Part shown: piece after piece, positions 1,336 to 60,470 of the stretch
Numbering within the stretch: the stretch's first letter is position 1
Layout: every line of letters starts with the position of its first letter
Assembly: GCA_011109175.1 (NCBI GenBank)
Contig: RDEW01000010.1
Span: 290,494 to 354,493, forward strand
DNA: 64,000 bases
DNA from: Dicyema japonicum
Taxonomy: Eukaryota; Animalia; Dicyemida
Direction of reading: 5' to 3'
Made by a program: the position numbers and the translations under genes
The notes under the pieces: generated by a model
The model's database searches: none
Told to the model about the DNA's origin: nothing
What the model saw: the letters and a program-made list of their open reading frames with translations, nothing else

Positions 1336-1849
1336 TAATTATATGATATACAATTCCTGAACACGGGGAACCTCAAAAAACGATTTAGAGAGGCTAGATA
1401 CTTTCCACAGAAACCAACTGCGCATACTGACTGGAATCTTCTGGCTGAGAAAATTCCTAATGTTTACAGGAGACATCGAACAGAACCCCGGGCCCCACAA
1501 GAACGTGAAATTCCTCAATGTCATAAATTTTAAAATAAACAGCCTTGCACACATATCAATCTAACTTTTTGCATTTCTACAAATGATATTGCCAAATGTG
1601 GTCTCCTCTTCAAATTTATTGACAGTAGTAGCTTTTGTAGATCGTTCAGAACTGCTAACTTTTAATGTCGCACTTTTCGATCTTTTTGAATTAACTTTTT
1701 AAACCATTTTTTCTAGCCATCGTTAATCATGGATCCTTTAAGCAAAATTTTAAATAATAAATTTCCAAAACTGTCTATATCCCAAAAATAATTCATCATT
1801 GCTGACGTATTCAACCAATCACTTACTTTTTATTGATGCTCTAAAAATA

Positions 1850-3451: not shown

Positions 3452-4315
3452 AACTATTGACATACAGAAGGCTGTGACTCGATACCGAGGAAACTGCTCA
3501 CTAGGAAGATTTATGGCTCTAACATTCAAACAACCTTAAAAGATTAATTATTAAACGTGGCGTCATGTAGTCTACCAGTCATAACGTTTCTGGAAGCGCT
3601 CAGGGTGCACCTAATGCACCTAGGAAAAAAACCATTTGCTCACCCTTATCCAAAGTTGGTTCCTTCGGACGGCTTCCTTCAACTCTTCTCCCATCAACTC
3701 TCACCACCTCTCTGGAAGACCTTATCGGACAAAATGGGAAGCGATTCGCCGCTCTGTGCCGAAAATCCAATTCCTACAATGCTCTAATGGATTGGGTCTT
3801 ATTAGAAGACTTTACATCACCCCTCTTGTATTCCTTTCAAAACCCTCCCGTCTTCAGAGAAGCTGTGTTGGATCTCGGAAGGTCCACCGGAAAAAGATGA
3901 GAGACCTAATGGAGGCGGCCGGGATCACCTAATTAGTTTAATACAATTAAATTAACTATTGGTGTTCTTGGGTTAAATAAAAAAAAACTATTGACTACAG
4001 AAGGCTGTGACTCGATACCGAGGAAACTGCTCACTAGGATGATTTATGGCTCCAACATTCAAACAACCAGAAAATTTGGCTCGCTAACTTCCTCAACGGA
4101 CAAAGAGGAAGAATAATTTTTCATTCCACATCTTCAGTCACTAAATTTTTACCGAATGGGATCCCGAAAAAATCCCCCTATCTCCCATTCTATTCAACCT
4201 ATTCATAAGCGACATGCCTTCCTACAGCTGCAACGATACCCTATTCCTTGCCTACGCCAACGACTTAATCCTGGGAATAAGAGACCATGCAATAACAGAG
4301 CAAGTACCCGCTTAC
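3452..4315 (+). mobile_element. Ingi/I-like LINE RT fragment interrupted by a 5'-truncated LINE 3' end (3536-3985)
   Basis: IDIQKA.DSI and LSPILFNLFISDMP..LAYANDL. The insert ends ...AAGIT* plus 3' UTR and A-tail, and is flanked by an ~83-bp direct repeat. Confidence 0.75.
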
Positions 4316-8660: not shown

Positions 8661-10036
8661 TTCATTAATCTTTAATAAATTATCGTTTGGCGTTTAACAA
8701 TTACGCTGCGTAGCATTTGCGCTGATACAGTCGATATATGGCGGTGATAATTGTGCTAATATATATAAAGGCAATATGCTGATTTTTATCCCAGAGTAGT
8801 TAAAAGTGTCAAATTATTGCATTTTTATGAAAATATTCTAATTATGACATGGACTAAGCGCACCACAGAAACCTTTTATATTATTGTCTATTTTAACGAT
8901 ATTAATTAATATTATTTAATTAATAAATGAATTATTTTAGATTTAGATTAATTTATGAGATTATGCATTATTATTCAATATTGTATCAAAAAAACTTAAT
9001 CTTGTCCATTCTCATCAATATAGTCAAGGGTAGATTATTAATGGATATTATTCAAGTACTGAACCTACATTTCTCTGCTTTTCTGCGGTAAACAGGCATT
9101 GAATAATCGCGTTCACATTAGATTGCGGTAATAATCTGTTTTCTATGTATTATTAGAATATTTAATCGCATTTATTTTTCGGTTGATATAATTCATTATA
9201 TTTTTGAAATTCAATTCCGACCAGGAGGAACAAAAATGAGTGAACTCAGAATGGTGCAATAACTCTTTCAAAACATTGGCCTTAGATATTGATGGGGACT
9301 CTCAATCAGCTCTTTGTGTCTGAAATCTCCCACTGTTAAATAATTTAATTTCACTTCATTTGGTGGAGGTTACAAAATACATTTTATGTCTTAAATGACG
9401 ACTAGGTCGCAATTTCCCAACCATAGAATCCCATTGACATTCTGAAGATTCTGATTCAAAGTTAGGTAAGACAAAAATCATTAAATTTGCTAAAATCGAT
9501 GAGTATTGATAATTTCTCGGCATGTGATACGTAATTGATTGCAGCTAGATTATGAGGCAATTTACCTGACTCGTCGTTTAGAAGAAAAAATCGATCAGTG
9601 TCCTTAGTATCAAGAATTGGTCTATATATTGACTAAAAAAAAGAACATTAAATTATCAACCTCTCAGCAGTCTTATCATCTTCGTTCTGATTGACCTATA
9701 CAGACCATTTTTTTCCTCGTTCCACTAGAGTGGCGTCATCCCATAACTACAAGGACGGGACATTTTTTCTTTTTCCGTTAGTCCTGGGGATACTTTTGCG
9801 TGATATTGGGAAATAAGTCCGCTTCTGAACCACTCGAATTCGGTGGATGCATTAACTAACTGTTAACTTCTTTCTCACCTTTGAAGTCCACGAGATTTAC
9901 TTATCTCATGGTGTATCGAGAATTATTAAATTAATAAAAGAAAGAACAAATAAACATATAATAATAATAAAATAATTATTAATTACATTTGAATAACTTT
10001 AAATAATAATTCAGCGGGCATTGTTTATTCTTGTGT

Positions 10037-12800: not shown

Positions 12801-12929
12801 AATCGTTATGAACTTAATTAACTTTAACTTCTCATGAGTGCTTATAATAAATGTCACGTTCTAATAGAGGTTAGGTTGAGAATGAGAAAAATTAATAATT
12901 TCTTATTTTCATAGGATGTAAACATTATT

Positions 12930-15280
12930 ATTATAAGCACTTATCGCTATGTCATAGACTTGACAAAGCATGTGCAACACGAGTTAGCAAATCACTGGTT
13001 AGTTTCATCCACTTCCTCCTATTCAAAGCCGCAGTGCGCAACCAATCAAGATCCTCTCCACTTCCAAGATGTCGTCCCATTTCTTTGAGGTCCTCGTCGA
13101 GAACGACTGCCAGTGTCGTCCTTGGGCGACCACGGAAACGAGGGCTTCCAAAATGAAATAATCCTCCATGGCTATGTTCGCGGGGGCATCTAGGTCCAGT
13201 CGCAGAATATAGCCGAAAATCCTCCATTGTGTATCCAAAATCTCATTAGAAATTTCTGAGGTCTTTGTTCTCTTATAAAGAAGATCGGATGACATTCTCG
13301 TATAACTTTTTTTGAACATCATATGCTGCAGTTGGTTTCTATGAAACCCATTAAGCCTCTTCAGTTCATTTTTTAAGCAGGCCTAGGTACCAGCGTTATA
13401 CAGTAGTATGAGTTTCACTAGCGAGTTGCATAATCGAGCTTTTGTTATAATGTCAAGGCTTTTTGTGGAACAAATTTTCTTCAGTTTGGAGAAGGCAGTT
13501 TGTGCTGAAGTTTTCCTTCTTGTAATGTCTTTATGGTCTACAAGGAGGGATCTAAGCTTTTTGCACTTGCACCAGTGCTCCTCCGTCCTTGTCTCTTCCT
13601 TCTTGATTTCAGTTATCTCAGTCTTGTGCGGATTTACTGTTAGGAACCAATCAACTAATCTTCTATGCACTTTTTTCAACAAGCGGGTGAACGATATTTT
13701 GTTATATGAAATAAAATCAACGTCGTCAGCATACGCAATAATGTTTGTCTTTTCAACCAGTTTCGGTTTCGAATCTCGTAGAGCAACTTCAAGGTATATG
13801 ACAAAAAATATAGGTGATAATGGGTCTCTTTGTGGAGAGCCAACAGTCGTCTCAAAACGGCGAGACAAGGCTCTCCCGACTCTTACAGTGAGCCAAGTAT
13901 CAGCTAGGAGGGTGGTGGCCATTCTGACAGTGGAGCGTCTAGGAAACTCCCCAGAACCAGAATTAGCCTCCGTCTGTCGACAGAGTCGAAGGCCCTCGAA
14001 ATGTCGATTCCGAGGATGGTTGTAGACATTTTGAACTTTTGAACGGCCGCAGATCTCCACTTGTGGGACCACAAAACATCGGAAGTAGATCTTCCTTTTC
14101 GGAATCCGCTGTGGTATAGCGACAGAAAAGTATCTAGGCGTCCTTCCATCCTTTGTAATGTTATGTTCGCCAGAATTTTCCGAAGTGAATTCATTAATAT
14201 GACCGGACGGAGGTTCTCCACCTTAGATCTTGGTTTATTCGCCTTCTGTACAGGTATCAAGATACCCTCTCCCAGGGTCAGCGTGTGACCATAATAGTAC
14301 ATTTCATTCAGGATCCTAGCGATGCATTCATACAGCTTTTGGGTTCCATATTTGAAGAATTCACCACGAGTCCGTCGGGGCCAGGAGTCCTGTTGTTTTT
14401 CAACTTGGAACTCGCAAGTTCAACTTCATATGGTGTGATTTCCTCGTCCAATTTTCCTCGTTCTAGGTGATAGTGTCGTTCCTTGGATTGAAAAAGTTTT
14501 CCAAAGTGGGCAGCGATAATTTCCGCCACTTCCCTTTGGTCCACAATTGCGTTCCTTTGGCATCTCTTATCATTATCGGTTGATGGGTCTTTTTCCTATC
14601 ATCTGTTTTACAGCCTCGTAAATCTAGCGTTGTCCTTGAGAGATTTTATCTTTTTAATCTGGTCCAGTGCTCCATTTCTGTTATCCTGGCGTATAGTTTT
14701 TCTTATTTTTGCTTTGATAGTTTTTCTTTCTAGCCGCAATTTTGATTTTACGTTCGAATCGTCAGTATTTTGATATAGCATCCATGGTCTTCTGTTTATT
14801 GGCAAGGTCCTTCACCGTGTAAATGTCATTGTGCGATGGGATTTTCTCATTTTCTTTCAATAGATGCAGATTGGCTCCTTTATGTGCTTAAAATCCCAGG
14901 ATATTCCGGGAAATTTTCTTATAATAAAAGTAAATTTTCTTTATAATTTAAATTTATATATAAAAATCTAAAATCTAAATTAATGAATGGTAGATTATTT
15001 AAAAAATTGAAAAATTTTATTAAGTTTTATATTTGTTTATCTCTTTCTCTTCCTATTAGTGTGGTGTCATGTGATCCACCTGTCCAGGTGGCGCTCAGTG
15101 CCTGGTCAGCACGAAAAATGATCATTTGCTCTCCCCCACTCCACTGGAGGTTTTTCCACAACTGCAAGTATGGACGTCTTGTACTTTTTATGTTGATTCC
15201 GGATGGACTCTGTTTCTGTCAAGTGGAAACTGGATACACTTAATTAGTTGTTTACTTTAACTTCTTTCTCGGTTAACAAA
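12930..15280 (-). mobile_element. RTE-like retrotransposon with 5' leader, internally deleted and frameshifted
   Basis: PGPDG, LRPVILMN, SGFRKGRST, DISRAFDSV, PQRDPLSP, YADD, GRPRTTL and WLRTAALNRRKW. The conserved leader motif lies at 15040-15270. Confidence 0.9.
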
Positions 15281-15339
15281 CAAATAATAAATAAATTTCT
15301 TACTTAGCTAATTAATATTTATTTATCAAAAACACAAAA

Positions 15340-16060
15340 ATCAATCAAAAATGATCTCCGTCGACATAATCGATCTTCGTACTCTATCACGATTGTAACA
15401 GAGTGCTAAAGTCTGTGGCCAACCAGCATCGTCTTGCATGCTCGTGTCCGCCGCCAACCATGGGAGCGGAGCGTGGCTGGATGCACTCCCGTGTTCCTCC
15501 TTGGGGACCTTTTTGGACGATGACTGTATTCGGATTGGGATCGCACAACGCCTGGGAGTTAATGTTTGCGTCGAACCAATGTCATTGTAGAGGGATCGTC
15601 GATGCCAAAGGGCTGCATCCGTTTTGTGCAAAAGGAGTGCGGGCAGAGCACTGCTATGAACAACATTGTCATGCGAGCTCTTGAAGCGGCAGGCTTCCCG
15701 GCAGTACTGGAGCCTGTGGGATTGGACCGCGGAGATGAGAAAAGACCGGGTGGGTTAACTATCTTTCCGTTCACCGAGGAAAAATCGTTCCTATGGGACT
15801 GCACTGTTGTGGATTCTTTCTCGAACTCAATGACTCAGTTCGGCTCAGTCTGCTGAATCGGCAGCCGATCTGCCGAGTAAATCAAGATTAAAAAATATGG
15901 CGAAATTGGAGACCGCTACCGTTTTGTACCGGTAGCAATCGAGACGTCTGGTGCGGCCGGAAGTATTACAGCCTCTTTCTTAAAGGAAATCGGGGGAAAA
16001 TTGTACCCACTTTCATATAAAGAGGTACATCCGGACCCACTTTCATATTCTCTTGAGGAG
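15340..16060 (+). mobile_element. CRE-clade (REL endonuclease) retrotransposon 3' fragment
   Basis: EPVGLDRGDEKRPGGLTIFPF..KS..WDCTVVD, K..KY and FVPVAIETSG (restriction-like endonuclease). Confidence 0.85.
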
Positions 16061-19087: not shown

Positions 19088-19699
19088 ATTGTTACTTTAA
19101 ATCTTTTATTTTTTGTGTTTTTGCTTATTTTGTCTAACAAAACCGTTGTCGCTCGCTTCATATTTAGTTGTCAGTAGATTCCTACGCAGTTACCTAGTTG
19201 GCCAAATGATTTCTCTTCTTCTGGATGCTTCATTCACCTAACTTAGAAGACACTCATGTCTGGTTGGCACCTTCTTTTTATCTACTCCAGTGGATGGGTT
19301 CAGATACCTGAAAAGGATATGATGCTGGGACTTATTACTCCGACCTGGGAAACTGGATAAAACTTATTTTGGGTATATTCAGGTTATTAAAAAACAGAAC
19401 GATTTTTAGATGCTTAATAAATATTACGTGAAAAGCAAGCATATAGAAGAGCTTGGAGAGATTTCTTTTTTATTCGCAGTGTCTCTAATTTGTGATTTCC
19501 CATGCAAAAAAACAGTTATATCCATATCATGACAGAACTTTTCTTATTTTCTTGCTTAAGAATTTAAGACGAGATGTCAGGGTTCATGCAAGAGATATGT
19601 CATGCACCAAGCCAAGTCCAATTGATAATAATGCGTTAATATTCTTTTGTGTTCATAATAATTATGACAGCTAAATTGATGTTAGTGATCATGTCAACA

Positions 19700-20747: not shown

Positions 20748-21098
20748 ACTTATTATTATTACCCCCAGGATCACTGGGTCAAAGAGAAAGAAATAAAAGT
20801 TCCCATCTAACTAAGTGATCCCAGACCGACAAAGGAGAGACGAGTCCGGCGGGTCGAGAATCCTGAACAGCTCTTCTCATTGAAACATGGTATCGGCTCA
20901 AAATTTCTGTATAATTGTAGAAATTTCGATAGTGTATGGAATAGAGGGCAGCTCGGTAAACTAGCCTCCTTTAAAATTTTCTGTTTTTATTCGATTAAAA
21001 AAGTTTTAATGGGCTGGATTTTGTGTTCTGGTCCAATTATCCTTATTGCAGTCTTCTCGATTGCGGATAGTTTCAATGAGGAGGATCGGATAGTTTCA
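20748..21098 (-). mobile_element. 5'-truncated Ingi/I-like LINE 3' end with (TAA)n tail
   Basis: The reverse complement aligns with 34850-35080 and ends in GIT* plus 3' UTR plus (TAA)n. Flanked by ACCCACTC direct repeats (20740, 21099). Confidence 0.75.
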
Positions 21099-23154: not shown

Positions 23155-24412
23155 TGCAATATATAAGATTTATAACAGACACTGTAAACTACTCAAACCA
23201 GAGAAAAGATGATGAAGACGTTGACAGATCCCATTACTGCTGCCCTGATTTTAGCATTCTTCGCATTATTAATACTATCAAAACAGTTTGTTGGAGAACC
23301 CATTGCTTGTTGTCCCCCGCAGAATTTAAAAGTTGTAAATTTTTTTTTAAAAATTACATTTATTATTATTGAATTAACAAAGTGGACAACTAACATTCAG
23401 TTGGCCATTTTAGACTAAATTTTACCAAATATAATTTCAATTTTATTTTTAACCATAATTTCTATTTTAGGCCATTTTACAAAATTAACAGAAAGAGTTT
23501 GTCTGATGAACGGACTTACGTGAACTCAAACGAAGGGACCATCAGACTTGTTTACTACCAGTGGATTCATTTCATATTTTTCCTGTCCGCAGTGATGTTT
23601 TATGTTCCTATTTTGTTTTGGAGGTCAGTCGTGAATAATTGTGGAATTAAAATTGACCAGTTGATCTCCAAGGCTGAACTCTCTCAGGACCTATCTTTGT
23701 TCCACGACCATGAGAACATAGCTACTTTACTTGCGAATGAAATCGAAAATTATATCGATTCCAGACAGGAACGACAGAATGTGCCTAAGAGAACGATATT
23801 CAAGCAGATTCTATTCGGGTTGCCTACATTAAACAGCAACTTTATGTATATTTCGATAAATTACATGTTCACGAAATTATTATTTCTTGGAAATATAATC
23901 ATTCAGCTTCACTTCCTTAATTATCTCCTTGGAGTCGGCTTCCTTGAAATTGGGATAAAATCCCTATTCTATCATCAAGATGAGCGACCAATCACTTCGC
24001 CAGACTCACCATGTGCGACTTTTCAATCCGTGAATTGAACCGAATCCATGACTACAGTATTGAGTGTATTCTCCCAATGAATGTGTTCTTGGAAAAAATA
24101 TTTATTTTTGTGTGGTTTTGGTACGTTCTTCTGGCAATCAGGACTTTTTGGAATATTCTAGCTTGGCTGGTAAATTTCTTCATAATAGAATCGCGTGTGA
24201 TTTTTCTCCGACCATATCTCAAATTGCATTCCTTTATTTTTAATGAAGATATGGATACTCTAAGATATAAATTTGTTGAGAAATATCTCCGATCTGACGG
24301 ATTCCTTATTTTAAAACTCCTTTCAGGAAACGTGAACAGTCTGGTTGTGGATGATGTGGTGGACCAATTGTGGACTAATTTTTGTTGTCGCTGTTTCGAA
24401 GAAAAAGTTTAA
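23155..24412 (+). CDS. inx: Innexin (gap-junction protein)
   Basis: DDEDVDR, SKQFVGEPIAC..PAEF, C...GTY, YYQW, FARLTMCDF, CILPMNVFLEKIFIFVWFW and YLRSDGFLIL. One 139-nt intron (23332-23470). Four small deletion frameshifts (~23230, 23312, 23513, 23989). Confidence 0.92.
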
Positions 24413-24685
24413 TTAAATTTCAACTTTTTTTTAAATTTTTTGCTTAAATATATTTAATTTTAAGTTAAGGTTTTTATTTTTATAAATTATATCTAATTAT
24501 TGGGATCACATAATCATATTATGTCACATGGGCGGCGCGTAACGCATGGGCAGCCTGTTACATTTTTTCGACCTTGAAAAGGTCTTTTGATTATCCGACA
24601 TTATTATTATTCTTATTATTATTACCCTCAGGATCACTGGGTCAAAGAGAAAGAAATAAAAGTTCTCATCTAACTAAGTGATCCC

Positions 24686-24967
24686 GATCTGGCTTCACAA
24701 AAAGGGCTTTGACATTATAACAAAAACTCGATTATACAACTCGCTAGTGAAACCCATACTACTGTATAACGCTGGTACCTGGGCCTGCTCAAGAAATGAA
24801 CTGAAGAGGCTTAATTCATTTCATAGAGACCAACTACGGCATATGATGTTCGAAAGAAGTGATACGAGGATGTCATCTAATCTTCTCTATAAGAGGACGA
24901 AGACCTCAGAAATTTCTAATGAGATTCTGGATACACAATGGAGGCTTTTCGGCCATATTCTGCGACT
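24686..24967 (+). mobile_element. Internal RTE fragment nested in Ginger, between direct repeats
   Basis: TKTRLYNSLVKPILLYNAGTW...QWRLFGHILRL, closely matching 13200-13480 (minus strand). Confidence 0.85.
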
Positions 24968-26569: not shown

Positions 26570-28480
26570 TAATTTAAAAAGCGCAGGCCTTCAATCATCA
26601 TACAAGTCTCTCAAGACAAAGGGAAACAAAAAATGTTTATTCCTTGCAGTTACAGACCCCCTCCAGTAAGGTGCGTAGAGCGAATAATCATTTTTTGTGC
26701 CATCTAGGTACTGGGTGCCATCTGAAACAGGTGGATCAAATGACTACACTCTAGTGACAGAAACAAAAATAGAAAGAGAAATCTTCTTTCTATATATTAA
26801 TGTTATAGAAATCGATTAAACATTTTGGTTTAGATGGTGACGAAATCTCTATTGCACAATGTCTTATTCGTATTGTTTACCAACTTCTCTGTTCACACTG
26901 GGAACCTTTAATTGCAGAGGACTTAAACAACCTCACAAGAATTTAGCACAGCGTTCAACTGACTCTTATGCAATACTTGTTTCAAGCACTCAGCAAGACA
27001 CAAGACAACTTGGATTGGCACCAGAAAAGACAAATCAGGCAACACAATTTGAATATACAACCAGATTGACTATATTCTCTGCAAGCAACATCAGAAGGCA
27101 CTCATGCAAAGTTCGAAGTCATATGGCGGACTTGAAACTAGCAGCAATCACAAACTTGTTGTCGCTTGGCTAATTCTAAACAGAATTCATGGAATACATG
27201 GAAAACGCAAAGGTATCGCCTCAGTACGATACGACATGGATGTTACGTTAGAGGCAGAGTCCTAACAAAGATCAAACAAATACAAAAATTCCTTCCCAGA
27301 AATGAAGAAAATCAAATTTCCGAAATAACGAAATATAAAGACGGACCAATGATGTTCAATGCAATTCGCTTCCTTAACAGAGGGAGGAGTTCGGCCCGAT
27401 CACTGTCCACGATAAGCTCGACCGTACTGTCATTGGAGACGTTAACAAAACTAATGTAATAGCTTCGCATTTTGATCATCTATTCAACTCGCACAGCGAA
27501 ATTAACTACATAATGAAATCATTGAAACCAGACAAATAAACATTACAATTAACTACACAATCATTGATACCAGACTATGCCAAAAGTATAAAAAATCTAT
27601 TGCAATACTTGGTATTGATATGTCCGTTTATTCGATTCGATACACCGGGAAAACTTATGGAAGTTCTGAAAAGTTTTCTTCACCCAGACGACGTTAAAAT
27701 AATTCGCCTTATCATGCAGAACACTCACATTTCTGTCAAAATTGGCAAATGTACCTCCAACTTTTTTCCAACTTTACGTGGAGTTCCACAGGGGGACTCG
27801 CTATCCCCGGTCTTTTTCATTTTACCATAAAGCTGTACTAAGAGAGTTCAGGACCCTGATTTGAAACAACTATGACGAAATAATTTATGCGGACGATCTG
27901 GATTTTGTTCTTAGGATACTCAAACACTTCAGCACATACTCAGCGTACTCCAACACATATTTTCGAAATGGTTCTTAACCGTACATCATGACAAAACGGA
28001 GTTTACAACGCTTACAAGTAATGATCGGAGATCGGACGAGTCATGGAGAAGGCAAAAGAAGGTTGGTTCGCTTCTAGGAGACTCTGAAAATGTTACTCGT
28101 AGGAAGATCCTTGCTATGAGTGCGCTGAAAAAAATATCGTCAATATGGAGCCACAAGAAGAGGATAGGACTAAACACCAGGCTTAGGATATACAAAACTT
28201 TTGTCATCCCGGTACTAACCTACAACTCTGGGACTTAAAGAATCTCTAAACGGGAAATGGACCGTCTTGACTCATTCCACAGAGCTCAGCTTAAATCGGT
28301 ACTCAAGATCAACTGGTCTATGAAGATCTCTAATGCTAACCTTTATGATAAATGCAAATCTGGCATGCTGTCAGAAAATATTTTCAAATCAAGATGGAGC
28401 CTCCTTGGTCACGTGTTTCGTCTAAATGACCAGGTCCCCGCAATTGTCGCTGAGGAAGAGGTTCTTTATATTTAGGCCGC
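26570..28480 (+). mobile_element. RTE-like retrotransposon with 5' leader (deleted and degenerate)
   Basis: Leader motif 26640-26760, LGTFNCRGL (APE start), GVPQGDSLSP, YADD and SRWSLLGHVFRL. Confidence 0.88.
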
Positions 28481-37419: not shown

Positions 37420-37660
37420 CTATGCCACGTGGCGTAAATGTTAACATGGTGCTAGATTTTTTGTTTATTTTTTCTGTTCCTCTTCTTCCTTTTTGCCTCC
37501 GGGCAGCTTGAATTGTAGTGTGCGTCACGTAGTTAACCATCTCTGGTGGCGCCAGACATCTTATAACAACCATCCAGAGGAGTTCCCCTTGGACGGCACT
37601 TCCTTAAGTCCGAACATGTGAAGACTGTTGAGGGAAACCTGGATCCCTGAATTTTTTCAT
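37420..37660 (-). repeat. Solo copy (diverged subfamily) of the structured leader repeat
   Basis: ATCCAGGTTTCCCT ... TGGCGCCACCAGAGATGGT ... GTGACGC, plus a CCACGTGG tail. Confidence 0.5.
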
Positions 37661-38029
37661 TGCTTTTTTCTGGTTTAATAAATAAATACAGATTAATTTG
37701 TCACGTGCTTGTAGCTTCTGTGGATCATTGACTGCAACTCAAATAAACAAATTAATTTTTTTTAACAATTAAACAAATGTCAGTCCTTCTCGTTGAACAA
37801 ATTAATTGATAATATTTAATTGGTACATCAATTACACGTGTCATCTTTAATTATCGGCCATCCCAAACATTGGGGTACATCATGTTTTTGATGCAAGCAT
37901 AATATTTTGATGTGTTCACTGTGATTTTACAATTCGATATTTTTGAATTTCATTAAACAATGATTTCTTTAAATGCAAAAAGTGAAATTTTTTAGATTGA
38001 ATTAATTAAATTAAAATTATTTCCAAAGT

Positions 38030-38225
38030 AACTAACTCCTCGATCCTGACTCGTTTCAGCACTCCAGAACTTGTTACCAGGTAACGACGTTGTCCCCGAG
38101 GAAGAATTTTTGGATCCTCTTGATGCCTGCCAGGCATTGGGTGCCTCCTCAGTAAGGTGGATCCAGTGAAGCCATCGGAAGGAAGGAAAATAATTTTGAC
38201 AAACTATCCACGTGGCGCCACGCGA
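38030..38225 (+). repeat. Solo short element carrying the structured leader core
   Basis: Aligns along its length with the reverse complement of 60250-60470; core shared with the RTE leaders. Confidence 0.75.
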
Positions 38226-44856: not shown

Positions 44857-45599
44857 TTGTCACATTGTTGAATTATTAAATAGAAATTCTTTTCTTAATT
44901 TTTAAGGTGACCTCTAATTTAAGTTTTCTATAACTTAGGATCAATAAATCACAGATTTCTTAGTTTTAATTTTTCCACGTGGTACATAATATAGTTAGGC
45001 CTAATTCGACAAATTCTTCTTCAATGGAGACGAGCACTCGATACGTCTCCACTGAGATCTGATAAAATCTGTCCTTGGCGACGGCAGAAATTATACACTG
45101 GAACTCAAAATGGAATAAAAAATTGAGATACACCAGAAATCTAAAAATACAAAGAATTAATCATCAAATTTGATTTAGTTTTAATTTTTTATTTTGAACA
45201 AGTTTCATTTAAGTTCTATAAAATTCTATTAAAACTACAATTTCTTAAGTTAAGATTTGAGTGAAAAATTCTTCCGAAACATTCATTTTTCTTATAAACA
45301 GTGTTTAGTTTTTTCTGAGTTATTAATCATCTCTGTTATAGAGAAATTGACAACTAATTACTGATTTTTCAGTCAAAATCAATTTTTTATAAAAACGAAA
45401 ACAACAAGTAAGAGTTACATATATTCCCCTCTAGAATGCGAGGAAATTGGTTCGAATAGCCAATAGCGCTTACGAAGGTTCCTGGATCGGGTTGAGATAA
45501 GGTTTCCGAGTTAAAGGATGTCGCTAATCATTTAGAACGAACATTTGTGATTCAGCTTGTGATACAATATATTAATTTAATTAACTTTAATTTATTAGC

Positions 45600-45885
45600 C
45601 CCGGATACACCGAGAAAGAAGTTAAGTAAACAACTAATTAAGTGCATTCAGTTTCCACTTCTATCCGGAATCAACATAAAAGGAAAAAGACGTCCATACT
45701 TGTAGTTGTGGAAACCCATCCAGTGGAGTGGGAAGAGCTAATGATCCTTTTTTTCGATCTGGCACTGGGCGCTACCTAAACAGGTGGATCACATGACGCC
45801 ACTCTAATAGGAAGGGAAATTGGAGGAACAAATAAAACATGCAGAAAACTTAAACCAATTAGCTACGTAGCACCACATGGGCCAA
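45600..45885 (+). repeat. Solo copy of the RTE 5' leader (structured repeat)
   Basis: Aligns with the reverse complement of 15040-15270; no ORF follows. Confidence 0.8.
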
Positions 45886-46745: not shown

Positions 46746-47339
46746 TTAATAGTCCTCATAACCTTGAAATATAGTATTTGGATCAAATGTCTGAAAATTG
46801 GTAGAAGGTGGATTTATTCCATTTACTTGTGGTTGATAGAAATTCTGATCGCTGTGATCATAAATATTCGGAAAATAGAAATTCGGGATATTTTCTGGGA
46901 GTTGATCATAGGGAAGTTGATTCATTTGGTAATTTCTTGGAATCCCAAATCCGTACATTTGGTTTTCCTGATTAAAAAAATATTGATTTGAGTGTAAATA
47001 GGCTTCTGCTTCATATGACGGATAAGTAAAATTTTGTGTAATTCCAGCCTTTTTTAGTTTATACCGATGATTTTGAAACCAAATTTTTACCTGTTTGGGG
47101 GTTAAGTTTATTCTTTTCGCAAATTCATCTCTTTCTGCAGTTGAAAGATAATTTTGGAAGTTGAACTTGTTTTGCAAAGCAAAAATTTGAACTTTAGAAA
47201 ACAAATTTCTTTTTTTCTTACGAGCAGTGCTATTCGATTTACAAATATTATTTTCACTTTTTTGGGACGGGGAGCCTGGAGACAAAATTGAATCAATACT
47301 TTCCGAAGATTTAAGTGGCCTGCGAGTCATATTGTTCAT
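46746..47339 (-). CDS. NKX2: NK2-class homeobox protein (NK2.1/NK2.2-type)
   Basis: Homeodomain KKKRNLFSKVQIFALQNKF..QNYLSTAERDEFA..INLTPKQVKIWFQNHRYKLKK with Tyr54 and HRYK. Intronless ORF. Confidence 0.9.
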   Translation of the reverse strand: MNNMTRRPLKSSESIDSILSPGSPSQKSENNICKSNSTARKKKRNLFSKVQIFALQNKFNFQNYLSTAERDEFAKRINLTPKQVKIWFQNHRYKLKKAGITQNFTYPSYEAEAYLHSNQYFFNQENQMYGFGIPRNYQMNQLPYDQLPENIPNFYFPNIYDHSDQNFYQPQVNGINPPSTNFQTFDPNTIFQGYEDY

Positions 47340-47829
47340 CAAACGTGGATTCTATATTTTAAATTAGTCATTCAACGTATATAAGAGTTCCTTGAGTAAT
47401 ATAATTAAATTTTATTGTTTTTTTTGAACAACCACTAATTTATTTTAAATGGACTTGTCAGACTTGATGAAAAGTCAGATTTTAATAAAAAATAACCTAA
47501 GGGTCTCAGGGTTTAGAGGAGACGTGGGAATTTATGAACTATTCTCACATCGAGTTGGTCTACCCCTAATAAATGCAAAATTCACGTTTTCGCACTTTGA
47601 AAATAAAACGAATTTAACTTACAAATCAAAAATGAGCGTATTTCGGATAATCACTTTCTTATAAACTATTCCGTTGAATAATATGGGGCGTTAATAGTTA
47701 CACAAATTTGTAATCCTTGTTTTGTAACATGAAATTATCAAAATAATAAATCTGTGCTTAAACATACAGCTAACCCATGATACACTATATTCTTGTAATA
47801 TCTGATGCATTGTAATGAGTTCATCACCA

Positions 47830-50955: not shown

Positions 50956-51899
50956 AAAATTTGTTTTTTTCCGTAATAAATTGTTCGAATTTTTATTGAT
51001 TATTAATTTTAAGAGAAAGATGACACTCCTCTTTTTGAGTGACGATTTAAGAGATTTTATTAACTATTGAATTTTAACTTCTGGACTTATTGTCTAGGAT
51101 ATCATGGCTATAACAGTGGTCTCTAGGTTCTATTCCCCCCATTTGGATACTTTGTCTAATAGTTCCTGTCTTTTAATCAGTTCTTTATCTCCACTACTTC
51201 ATTAGTGCGCTGTCTCAGGGGTCCCCAGTAACGAGACGGCGTCATGTGATTCACCCGTCTCAAGGCGCCCAATGAAGAGATAGCATCGAGATTCAACATT
51301 CCTTTCTTTAACTGAGTGATCAGTTGACAATAAAAAATAACATAGCATTAAAACGAACTACGTGAAGCTACCGTTTCATTTGCTAATTTTTGGTGCATTA
51401 CTCAAGTTGTGTCATTCAATGTGAAATAAACTATGTCTTCAGAGCTGTTAATGGAACAGGGTGATCGCTAGCAGTGGATCTTGTCTAAACATATAGAAAA
51501 AAGTGATTATAGTTTAATAACGTGAACTCTATGGCTTCGATCTGCTGCCCCTACAGGGTGCTGCTCGGGGCGGCTGCCTCAATGGCCACCCTCTAGGTAC
51601 GCCCTTGAAAGCATTTCATTAAAATTAGACAATTTTGGGATGAAATTTTTGAAATTCTATAACGGCATTACTTGAAAATCAATGCATACCAGGAAAAATC
51701 CTACCGAGTGTCCTCAACAATGACATGTACAAACTATGAAAGATATGAAAACAACTTAAGAAAGCGAACAACAAACGAGCGCTGAGAATATTGGCCGGTC
51801 AGATCTTCAACAAGATGATACAAGAGTAATAGTAATGACTATGTGCTATAATATTATTATTTATTAACCAAATAAATTTATTGACAAAAACAAAGTTAA

Positions 51900-60249: not shown

Positions 60250-60470
60250 CGCGTGGGGCCATGTGGTGTTATGTGGCTATCTGGTCAAAAATTATTTTTC
60301 TTCTTACCGATGGTGTCATTAGATCCACTTTACTGAGGAGACGCCCAATGCCTGGTCAGTATCAAGATGATCCAACTATTCATTCCCCAGGGGACAATGT
60401 CGTTACCTGGAGACAAGTTCTGGAGCGCTGGAACGAGTCAGGATCAAGTAGTTTATTAGTTTGGTTACCC
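60250..60470 (-). repeat. Solo short element carrying the structured leader core, just upstream of SNRPC
   Basis: Paralogous to 38030-38225. Confidence 0.75.

Follow-up and report, generated by a model that had tools for sequence, protein, structure and literature searches.

This analysis concerns a stretch of 64,000 nucleotides, hereafter the window, from the dicyemid Dicyema japonicum (GenBank assembly GCA_011109175.1, contig RDEW01000010.1, positions 290,494 to 354,493 of the forward strand), and a core of about 70 nt that recurs along it. An earlier note, made from the letters of the window, had described this core as a candidate new ribozyme-like RNA, conserved in the 5' leaders of RTE retrotransposons and in diverged solo copies. 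At 12925-15300, a truncated RTE on the minus strand and a truncated short interspersed element (SINE) on the plus strand lie head-to-head with a 124-nt AT-rich spacer between them, and the core found there belongs to the SINE. The published, reduced genome of this parasite comprises 67.5 Mb in 377 scaffolds, with 36.7% GC and 49% repeats, which were left uncharacterised in the genome paper (PMC6736024). Our genome counts were taken over an assembly of 67.5 Mb, 377 contigs and approximately 37% GC. Positions are those of the window unless they follow the number of another genomic locus (L044, for example).

The core and the short elements that carry it

All seven sites listed in the earlier note were recovered with nhmmer and with a covariance model (R1, described below) run with its filters off, at 15057-15126, 26683-26753, 45740-45806, 38110-38179, 60305-60375, 37516-37574 and, weakly, 51233-51300. 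Both methods added an eighth copy at 3553-3636(+), which the note had lacked. Of two weaker remnants that it had proposed, one gave only a partial nhmmer match at 19232-19271 (E 0.009), and the other, at 9730-9880, had no match. The seven sites aligned over a common block of approximately 70-90 nt with poorly aligning flanks. The copies are diverged, since a search with 50 bases of the core and up to 3 mismatches found the copy at 15 kb alone. Around that copy, 15040-15270 is AT-poor compared with its flanks and contains the core at 15066-15126. Core copies were far more numerous than chance allows: across the 67.5 Mb of the genome, one family had at least 1467 first-look candidates and another 627. 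The core sequence had no match in the full text of the papers searched, and a metagenome scan with a 16-base pattern returned 120 stretches, all of them chance matches restricted to the seeded ~30 nt.

The solo copies proved to be distinct carriers, namely short non-autonomous elements of several families. Family F1 has a unit of approximately 320 bp with at least 1467 candidates in the genome (query: core plus 70 nt of flank), the best 40 of which were 89-92% identical, and its ends were sharp across 30 aligned loci. Family F2 has a unit of approximately 245 bp and 627 candidates, and takes in the copies at 38 and 60 kb, while a third family, that of the 37-kb copy, had 277 candidates at 68-77% identity. 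In the orientation of the earlier note, a variable (ATTT/ATT)n run precedes the F1 unit, which ends abruptly at ...CATGGCGCCACGCGGC. At least 7 of the 30 F1 copies, including the one at 15 kb, were truncated at the ...CATGGCGCCACGCGGC end. Likewise, 7 of 27 F2 copies were shortened or deleted at their ...GGCGCCACGCG end and none of the 27 at the microsatellite end. Target-site duplications surround F1 and F2 units (e.g., at L072, L063, L012 and L071), and a filler of 10-26 nt was seen with F2 copies at the GCG end of the unit. For the F1/F2 copies in L012, L071 and L072, these 10-26 nt of unrelated filler separate the SINE 5' end from the target-site duplication, which hints that template jumps or untemplated synthesis often occur at the 5' junction.

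Target-primed reverse transcription is recognised by an intact 3' tail, truncation at the 5' end and untidy 5' junctions. Because F1 and F2 have an intact A/T-repeat tail, are truncated at the opposite end and have untidy junctions there, their sense strand is the reverse complement of the one read in the earlier note. The target-site duplications agree with this strand, from which the module would be transcribed. Both families are short, non-coding and high-copy, with intact 3' tails, 5' truncations and target-site duplications, as SINEs are. No RNA polymerase III small-RNA head was found by ARAGORN in the window or in 37 loci, and an Rfam search of four full-length loci on both strands gave no tRNA, 5S or 7SL match at E up to 10. 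The head of the short elements repeats nucleotides 4-19 of a resident long interspersed element (LINE). Because of this repeat and the lack of an RNA polymerase III head, F1 and F2 may not be SINEs in the narrow sense but non-autonomous elements derived from a LINE, and we use the term SINE for them broadly. The 3' ends of the RTE-like families examined read ...GCGAUAAGUGCUGUA(UAA)n, and apart from the A/T microsatellite they have nothing in common with the F1 and F2 tails.

The copy at 15 kb is a 5'-truncated F1 element at 15034-15273(+), with 89% identity to the full unit (unit positions 38-276; 30-copy alignment). It lacks the ~85-nt head, and its tail enters an A/T microsatellite at ~15275-15300. 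A near full-length F1-like copy occupies 45576-45884(-), with its core at 45740-45806 (82% identity, unit positions 16-329; R1, 74.1 bits), and an old F1-like fragment lies at 26644-26753(-), with its core at 26683-26753, antisense to the adjoining RTE at 26942-28460(+). An F2 copy with a deletion in its head was delimited by genome search at 38023-38221(-), core 38110-38179 (query positions 4-202; 27-copy alignment; R1, 36 bits). The plus strand carries the diverged F2-like core at 60305-60375, the core of the third, older family at 37516-37574 (R1, 19.1 bits, E 0.07), in which the P4 helix described below is unrecognisable, and a degenerate copy at 51233-51300 (nhmmer E 1e-9; R1, 15 bits, E 0.47).

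The F1 unit also offers a candidate long-range 8-bp stem between core and tail, GUUUCCAC/GUGGAAAC (e.g., at 45651-45715), and a candidate hairpin near the 3' tail that pairs GGAUACAC with GUGUAUCC. Two stretches of 38 nt each, 20784-20821 and 24647-24684 (+), match this tail-hairpin region with equal statistics (79.5% identity), and the second lies right against a C-terminal RTE fragment at 24687. Pieces of animal genes were also present in the window, as innexin and homeodomain open reading frames (ORFs) at 23499-24038(+) and 46746-47342(-).

Neighbouring RTE elements

RTE-like coding sequence was found at 14884-13332(-), at 26942-28460(+) and elsewhere in the window. Read in the orientation of the earlier note, three cores (at 15 kb, at 26 kb and in locus L045) lie approximately 150-200 nt upstream of such coding sequence. 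This position, together with nested helices that form equally on either strand, speaks for the idea that the core is a new ribozyme or translation fold belonging to an RTE 5' leader. The position was confirmed for the two copies in the window that the note had placed directly 5' of RTE ORFs; the leader was not, since the adjoining RTEs are 5'-truncated, starting at amino acids 315 and 169, and the cores sit in separate short elements. The copies, read on that strand, start with the microsatellite tail and finish with the head, antisense to the element that carries them. Seven full-length RTE-like loci (L043 to L049) have no core leader. The homology between the sister RTEs of L043 and L045 begins at the ORF, and the F2-like block upstream of L045 is missing in L043. 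Among neighbours of RTE fragments over 338 kb, all four classes of core orientation and position occur, with 7, 5, 5 and 3 cases, so that copies are equally numerous downstream of RTEs or in the other orientation. The cores at 15 and 26 kb are therefore antisense SINE fragments beside truncated RTEs, not RTE leaders, and we consider the reading as an RTE leader hardly credible.

The RTE beside the 15-kb copy is a 5'-truncated LINE at 12925-14910(-), which runs from amino acid 315 to the end (tblastn; RVT_1 and DUF6451 domains) and has its own (TAA)n-type 3' end at ~12925. It is 91.6% identical to the RTE of L044 by blastn. The SINE fragment next to it is ~90% identical to the F1 family and only 74% identical to the F1-like piece in L044. 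Twin priming or a single double insertion was considered for this pair, but no clear duplication was found in the flanks between 12.9 and 15.3 kb, and the RTE and SINE identities to L044 differ. Close pairings of an RTE with a core recur at 26.6 kb and in L045, with two in the window compared with ~0.08 expected from repeat density. Another arrangement was seen at L044:5700-6070(+), where an RTE-like ORF is joined at ~5722 to a same-sense F1-like unit without its first ~12 nt. This unit takes the place of the last ~100 nt of the RTE itself. The joint has the form expected from template switching and looks like a template-switch chimera or a tail exchange.

Helix order, covariation and the link to LINE leaders

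On the sense strand, the F1 core reads GGCGUC-AUG-UGAUCC-ACCU-GUCU-AGGU-GGCGCC-CA-GUGCC-AGGCC-GGCAC-GAAAAA-GGAUCA, in the order P1(5')-J1/2-P2(5')-P3-L3-P3'-P1(3')-J1/4-P4-J4/2-P2(3'). The helices of this ~62-nt module are thus P1 (GGCGUC/GGCGCC), P2 ((U)GAUCC/GGAUC(A)), P3 (ACCU/AGGU) and P4 (GUGCC/GGCAC), with the joints J1/4 (CA) and J4/2 (A-rich). In the 15-kb copy, where R1 matched 15057-15126(+) with 92.9 bits, alignment A7 places the core at 15063-15124(+). Its helices are P1 at 15063-15068/15090-15095, P2 at 15072-15077/15119-15124, P3 at 15078-15081/15086-15089 and P4 at 15098-15102/15108-15112, and its joints J1/4 and J4/2 are at 15096-15097 and 15113-15118. The order P1-P2-P3-P3'-P1'-P4-P4'-P2' is the nested double pseudoknot of ribozymes resembling that of hepatitis delta virus (HDV). 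Because the sense-strand helices follow this order exactly, the module is not an undescribed class of fold, contrary to the novelty first proposed for it. The helices written out in the earlier note are nevertheless present in the sequence: its closing stem is P2, its hairpins 2 and 3 are P4 and P3, and its suggested pseudoknot of TGGGCG with TGACGCC is P1 seen from the other strand. The HDV core could not be fitted at that time because the wrong strand was read.

The helices covary, as had been suggested, and they do so between lineages. Model R1 was built from the nested helices only, leaving P1 out, and found 76 copies; pairs were then counted on alignment A7, to which P1 was added as a pseudoknot, for a total of 21 pairs. 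In A7, 90.9% of cells were paired compared with 86.3% in shuffles, 16 of the 21 pairs had changes on both sides (6.7 +/- 1.7 in shuffles), and the covariation score was 0.191 against 0.115; none of 500 shuffles matched the observed values. When the partners were slid, only 31-52% of cells paired. P1, which stood outside the model that made the alignment, paired in 92% of cells and had double changes in four of its six pairs. With 18 lineage representatives, one row each, 85.3% of cells were paired (77.5% shuffled) and 15 of 21 pairs had double changes (6.8 shuffled), which was reached by 0 of 2000 shuffles. P4 was wholly replaced in sequence between lineages (GUGCC/GGCAC, AUGCC/GGCAU, GAUAC/GUAUC, GUGCA/UGCAU, GAGGGC/GCCCUC) while a hairpin of 5-7 bp was kept. 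P2 changed from A-U to G-C, from C-G to U-A and from U-A to G-C or C-G, and P1 was represented by GGCGUU/AACGCC, GUGGUC/GGCCGU and GGCGUC/GACGUU, among others. The most informative single lineage is a further short family with an F1-like head at L071:1740-1902(+), whose P1 (GUGGUC/GGCCGU), P2 (UGGUU/AACCA) and P4 (GAUAC/GUAUC) all differ in sequence. One P1 pair is fixed as U.G in 55 of 69 rows and is U-A in 8. In the 60-kb copy (P1 = GGUGUC/GACGCC), this U.G became U-A and one C-G became U.G. On the strand of the earlier note, the fixed U.G would be a C.A mismatch, a further point against an RTE leader there.

Diverged copies of the module also directly precede LINE coding sequence, in sense orientation, at L044, L062, L015 and position 3553 of the window. 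In L044 (9136-9208), the module is followed by ...SGDVEPNPGP, a 2A motif, and by an Exo_endo_phos_2 domain (E 2e-18); in L062 (1274-1356) by the start of Exo_endo_phos; and in L015 (487-578) by an N-terminus that was judged by eye to be like that of an apurinic/apyrimidinic endonuclease (APE). The version in the window, 3553-3636(+), matched R1 with 22.4 bits and has P1 as GGCGUC/AGCGCU, with a G1.U pair, and a longer P4 hairpin of 7 bp. It is followed by weak similarity to reverse transcriptase (RT; blastx E 0.03), in a piece with no Pfam match, and its relatives in the genome start at ~3551-3553 according to an own-genome boundary search (query positions 71-74). These leader-bearing LINEs are unlike the RTE-like families, whose copies begin with the APE domain and have no leader. 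Hence, the core is indeed found in LINE-type 5' leaders, but the carriers are APE-type LINEs and not the RTEs, since L043 to L049 lack it. Motifs of the 2A StopGo type stand just before the LINE APE domain both in L044 (DVEPNPGP, 9213-9380(+)) and in the window (DIEQNPGP, 1397-1500(+)). The L044 motif comes ~80 nt after the leader, and the ATGs of this leader, at 9148 and 9193, are both out of frame with it.

The 5' boundaries of the LINE families were read from the start of homology, using leader-plus-flank queries against the whole genome. In the family with the 2A motif (2A-LINE), the homology of 21 of 39 copies starts precisely at the first base of P1 (G1), three copies begin upstream and the rest are truncated. 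The starts of three other families, L062b, L015b and w3553, lie 6-7 nt upstream of P1, and the 6 nt before P1 are conserved as well (UAGCGU, AAACGU, UAGAGU). An alternative P1 that uses these 6 nt (AACGU/ACGUU in L062b) was rejected, as it is not conserved in w3553 or L015b. In the SINEs, both the head (nt 6-21) and the core (nt 87-106) match nt 4-24 of the LINE with 94-95% identity, and J4/2-P2' with ~12 nt downstream also match between the two. The short elements therefore hold the LINE 5' end twice, first as a partial copy at their own start and then in full.

Taken together, the sense strand and the build of the elements, the order of the helices and their compensatory changes, and the position at LINE 5' ends with the boundaries read there make it probable, in our view, that the core is a ~62-nt leader module of LINEs with HDV topology, carried also as the central body of F1- and F2-type short elements, where it is not cut. 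A number of results weigh against this conclusion. Folding of 24 diverse copies with RNAalifold gave no consensus pairs on either strand, a result likely due to decayed copies and to a one-base register shift between F1 and F2 that MAFFT left ungapped. The folding energies of single sequences were ordinary compared with shuffles (z -1.55 to +0.71). Rfam returned no family at gathering score over the window, and none at E up to 10 for 14900-15400 and four full-length loci on both strands, so that the known-family match sought as a check did not appear; the test is weak for HDV families because their models cannot score pseudoknots. Departures from pairing among copies were G.U in 60 cases and A.C in 52, with no strand asymmetry, and as these numbers are equal in effect, variation within families is neutral decay without signal. 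The covariation is drawn from perhaps 8-15 lineages, three of the four helices had guided the alignment, and many of the representatives consist of one decayed copy. Finally, the similarity between SINEs and LINEs is limited to blocks of 16-45 nt with weak E-values. Taking these points into account, we still hold that the HDV-topology fold is probably real.

Cleavage, promoter and the role of the module

HDV-like ribozymes cleave at the first base of P1 (PMC4908430), and such ribozymes are established at the 5' ends of RTE, R2 and L1Tc (PMC3185411, PMC4908430, PMC5786205). An active self-cleaving ribozyme of this kind would make the LINE 5' end by cutting at G1, and would be active or partly silenced in the SINEs. 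The helix order fits, and so does the excess of 2A-LINE copies that begin at G1 over the three that begin upstream; yet J4/2 in this family, the only one with ends at G1, is GGAAGA and lacks the catalytic cytosine in 59 of 59 copies, the three other leader-bearing LINE families start upstream of G1, and an internal promoter that starts transcription at G1 could explain such ends equally well. Four lineages (L044b, L062b, w3553 and L071b), and 10 of 69 rows overall, have G.U as the first P1 pair, but F1 and F2, as well as L015b, have G-C. A cytosine does occur in J4/2 of F2 (CAAGA), L015b (CCGAAAA) and L071b (CAAAAA), and in F1 (GAAAAA) it is available only as the closing base of P4, giving C-GAAAAA if the last P4 pair opens. 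HDV has C-G-A-A, which the C-initial J4/2 joints of L015b, F2 and F1 recall. J1/4 almost invariably offers CA, and L3 contains a UG in F1, F2 and the 2A-LINE family, at differing L3 positions; P1.1 would be at most a 2-bp C-G/A-U contact. No Rfam HDV-family model matched. In full SINE copies, the 60-90 nt upstream of G1 are retained, and no end at G1 was seen among the truncated SINE copies. Judging from sequence features alone, the module may cut in some LINE families, which we regard as doubtful, and it is unlikely to cut in the SINEs; an active ribozyme that accounts for the module as a whole appears rather improbable.

The conservation could also lie at the DNA level, in an internal promoter or 5'-end signal of the LINE that was duplicated in the SINE, with the helices incidental. 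L1Tc provides a precedent, as its Pr77 is both promoter and ribozyme (PMC3185411, PMC3383444). The most conserved part is the first ~20 nt of the LINE (GU-GGCGYC-AUGU-GG), present twice in the SINE, one of the two being at its very 5' end, each unit has the palindrome GGCGCC three times, conservation extends to the 6 nt upstream of P1 and the folding energy is unremarkable. Such a signal leaves unexplained the complete change of P4 and P3 sequences with their hairpins kept, and also why P1 and P2 show paired double changes from lineage to lineage, and we find it an unlikely account.

We therefore return to a LINE leader module that is carried uncut by short elements. Since it lies at, or 6-7 nt from, the 5' end of the LINEs, we propose that the module most likely helps to form or use the 5' end of their RNA. 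The SINE module would have been acquired from a LINE 5' end and not the reverse, following the published pattern, and in the short elements it follows a head of 60-90 nt, in which the first ~20 nt of the LINE recur. Selection on source copies may maintain the fold in these elements, presumably because their RNA must resemble the LINE 5' region to the retrotransposition or translation machinery. This selection would not be for cutting, because every full copy retains the head that cleavage would remove. A bolder version, which we think improbable, is that an HDV-like branch without the canonical J4/2 cytosine still sets the 5' end of the 2A-APE-RT LINE at G1, through another catalytic arrangement or a non-catalytic role, while being needed as an uncut internal module for mobilising thousands of short elements.

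Eickbush in 2010, and Ruminski and Sanchez-Luque in 2011, reportedly described HDV-like ribozymes at the 5' ends of retrotransposons without long terminal repeats (non-LTR). These ribozymes occur in R2, RTE and L1Tc/ingi (PMC3185411, PMC4035085, PMC4908430). The dicyemid module shares with them the nested double pseudoknot and its strand order, and it is located at or near the 5' end of APE-type LINEs; in one family, the element starts at the first base of P1. Its J4/2 is A-rich, several lineages have G1.U, and the order of leader, 2A peptide and APE-RT in the 2A-LINE is that of L1Tc. Unlike HDV-like ribozymes, the G1-starting family lacks the J4/2 catalytic C and other families start 6-7 nt upstream; P1 has 6 bp and mostly begins with G-C, P3 has 3-4 bp, P1.1 is uncertain and there is no Rfam match. 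The dicyemid module is also known from sequence alone, unlike the LINE ribozymes.

LINE 5' untranslated regions are known to serve as SINE bodies (Kojima, 2018; PMC5786205), and conserved SINE central domains include CORE, V, Deu, Ceph and Meta (PMC4824008). As in those SINEs, several dicyemid short families with different flanks share one conserved block that matches the 5' region of a resident LINE. Compared by description rather than by consensus sequence, the dicyemid block differs in being a recognisable HDV-topology fold, and it comes from the extreme LINE 5' end, of which a second, partial copy stands in front of it. According to Kojima, a 5' ribozyme inside a SINE would be lost or harmful (PMC5786205). 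NARTc, RIME and SIDER are non-autonomous derivatives of L1Tc/ingi that keep the Pr77/L1TcRz 5' end (PMC3383444, PMC4035085), and the dicyemid short elements likewise begin with the 5'-terminal sequence of their LINE, which has an HDV-like fold. The dicyemid case differs from NARTc, RIME and SIDER in its animal host, in the place of the full fold, which lies inside the element, 60-90 nt from the 5' end, instead of at its terminus, and in its copy number, which reaches the thousands in 67.5 Mb of genome.

Both LINE-derived SINE bodies and HDV-like ribozymes at LINE 5' ends were thus known before. The earlier note was right about the kind of object, a structured RNA related to LINE leaders, and wrong about its strand, carrier and novelty. 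This analysis contributes the boundaries (G1 in the 2A family and -6 in the others), the lack of a cytosine in J4/2 and the finding that the SINE head duplicates the LINE 5' end. The 2A-LINE family provides a sharp test case, with 5' ends at the cleavage position and a J4/2 without cytosine, and would point either to non-canonical cutting or to another job for the module. If our reading is true, the central domain of these SINEs would be a whole HDV-topology pseudoknot, kept by compensatory change and apparently uncut. A "conserved SINE core", whose function the literature leaves unexplained (PMC4824008, PMC5786205), would then have a concrete explanation in structure.

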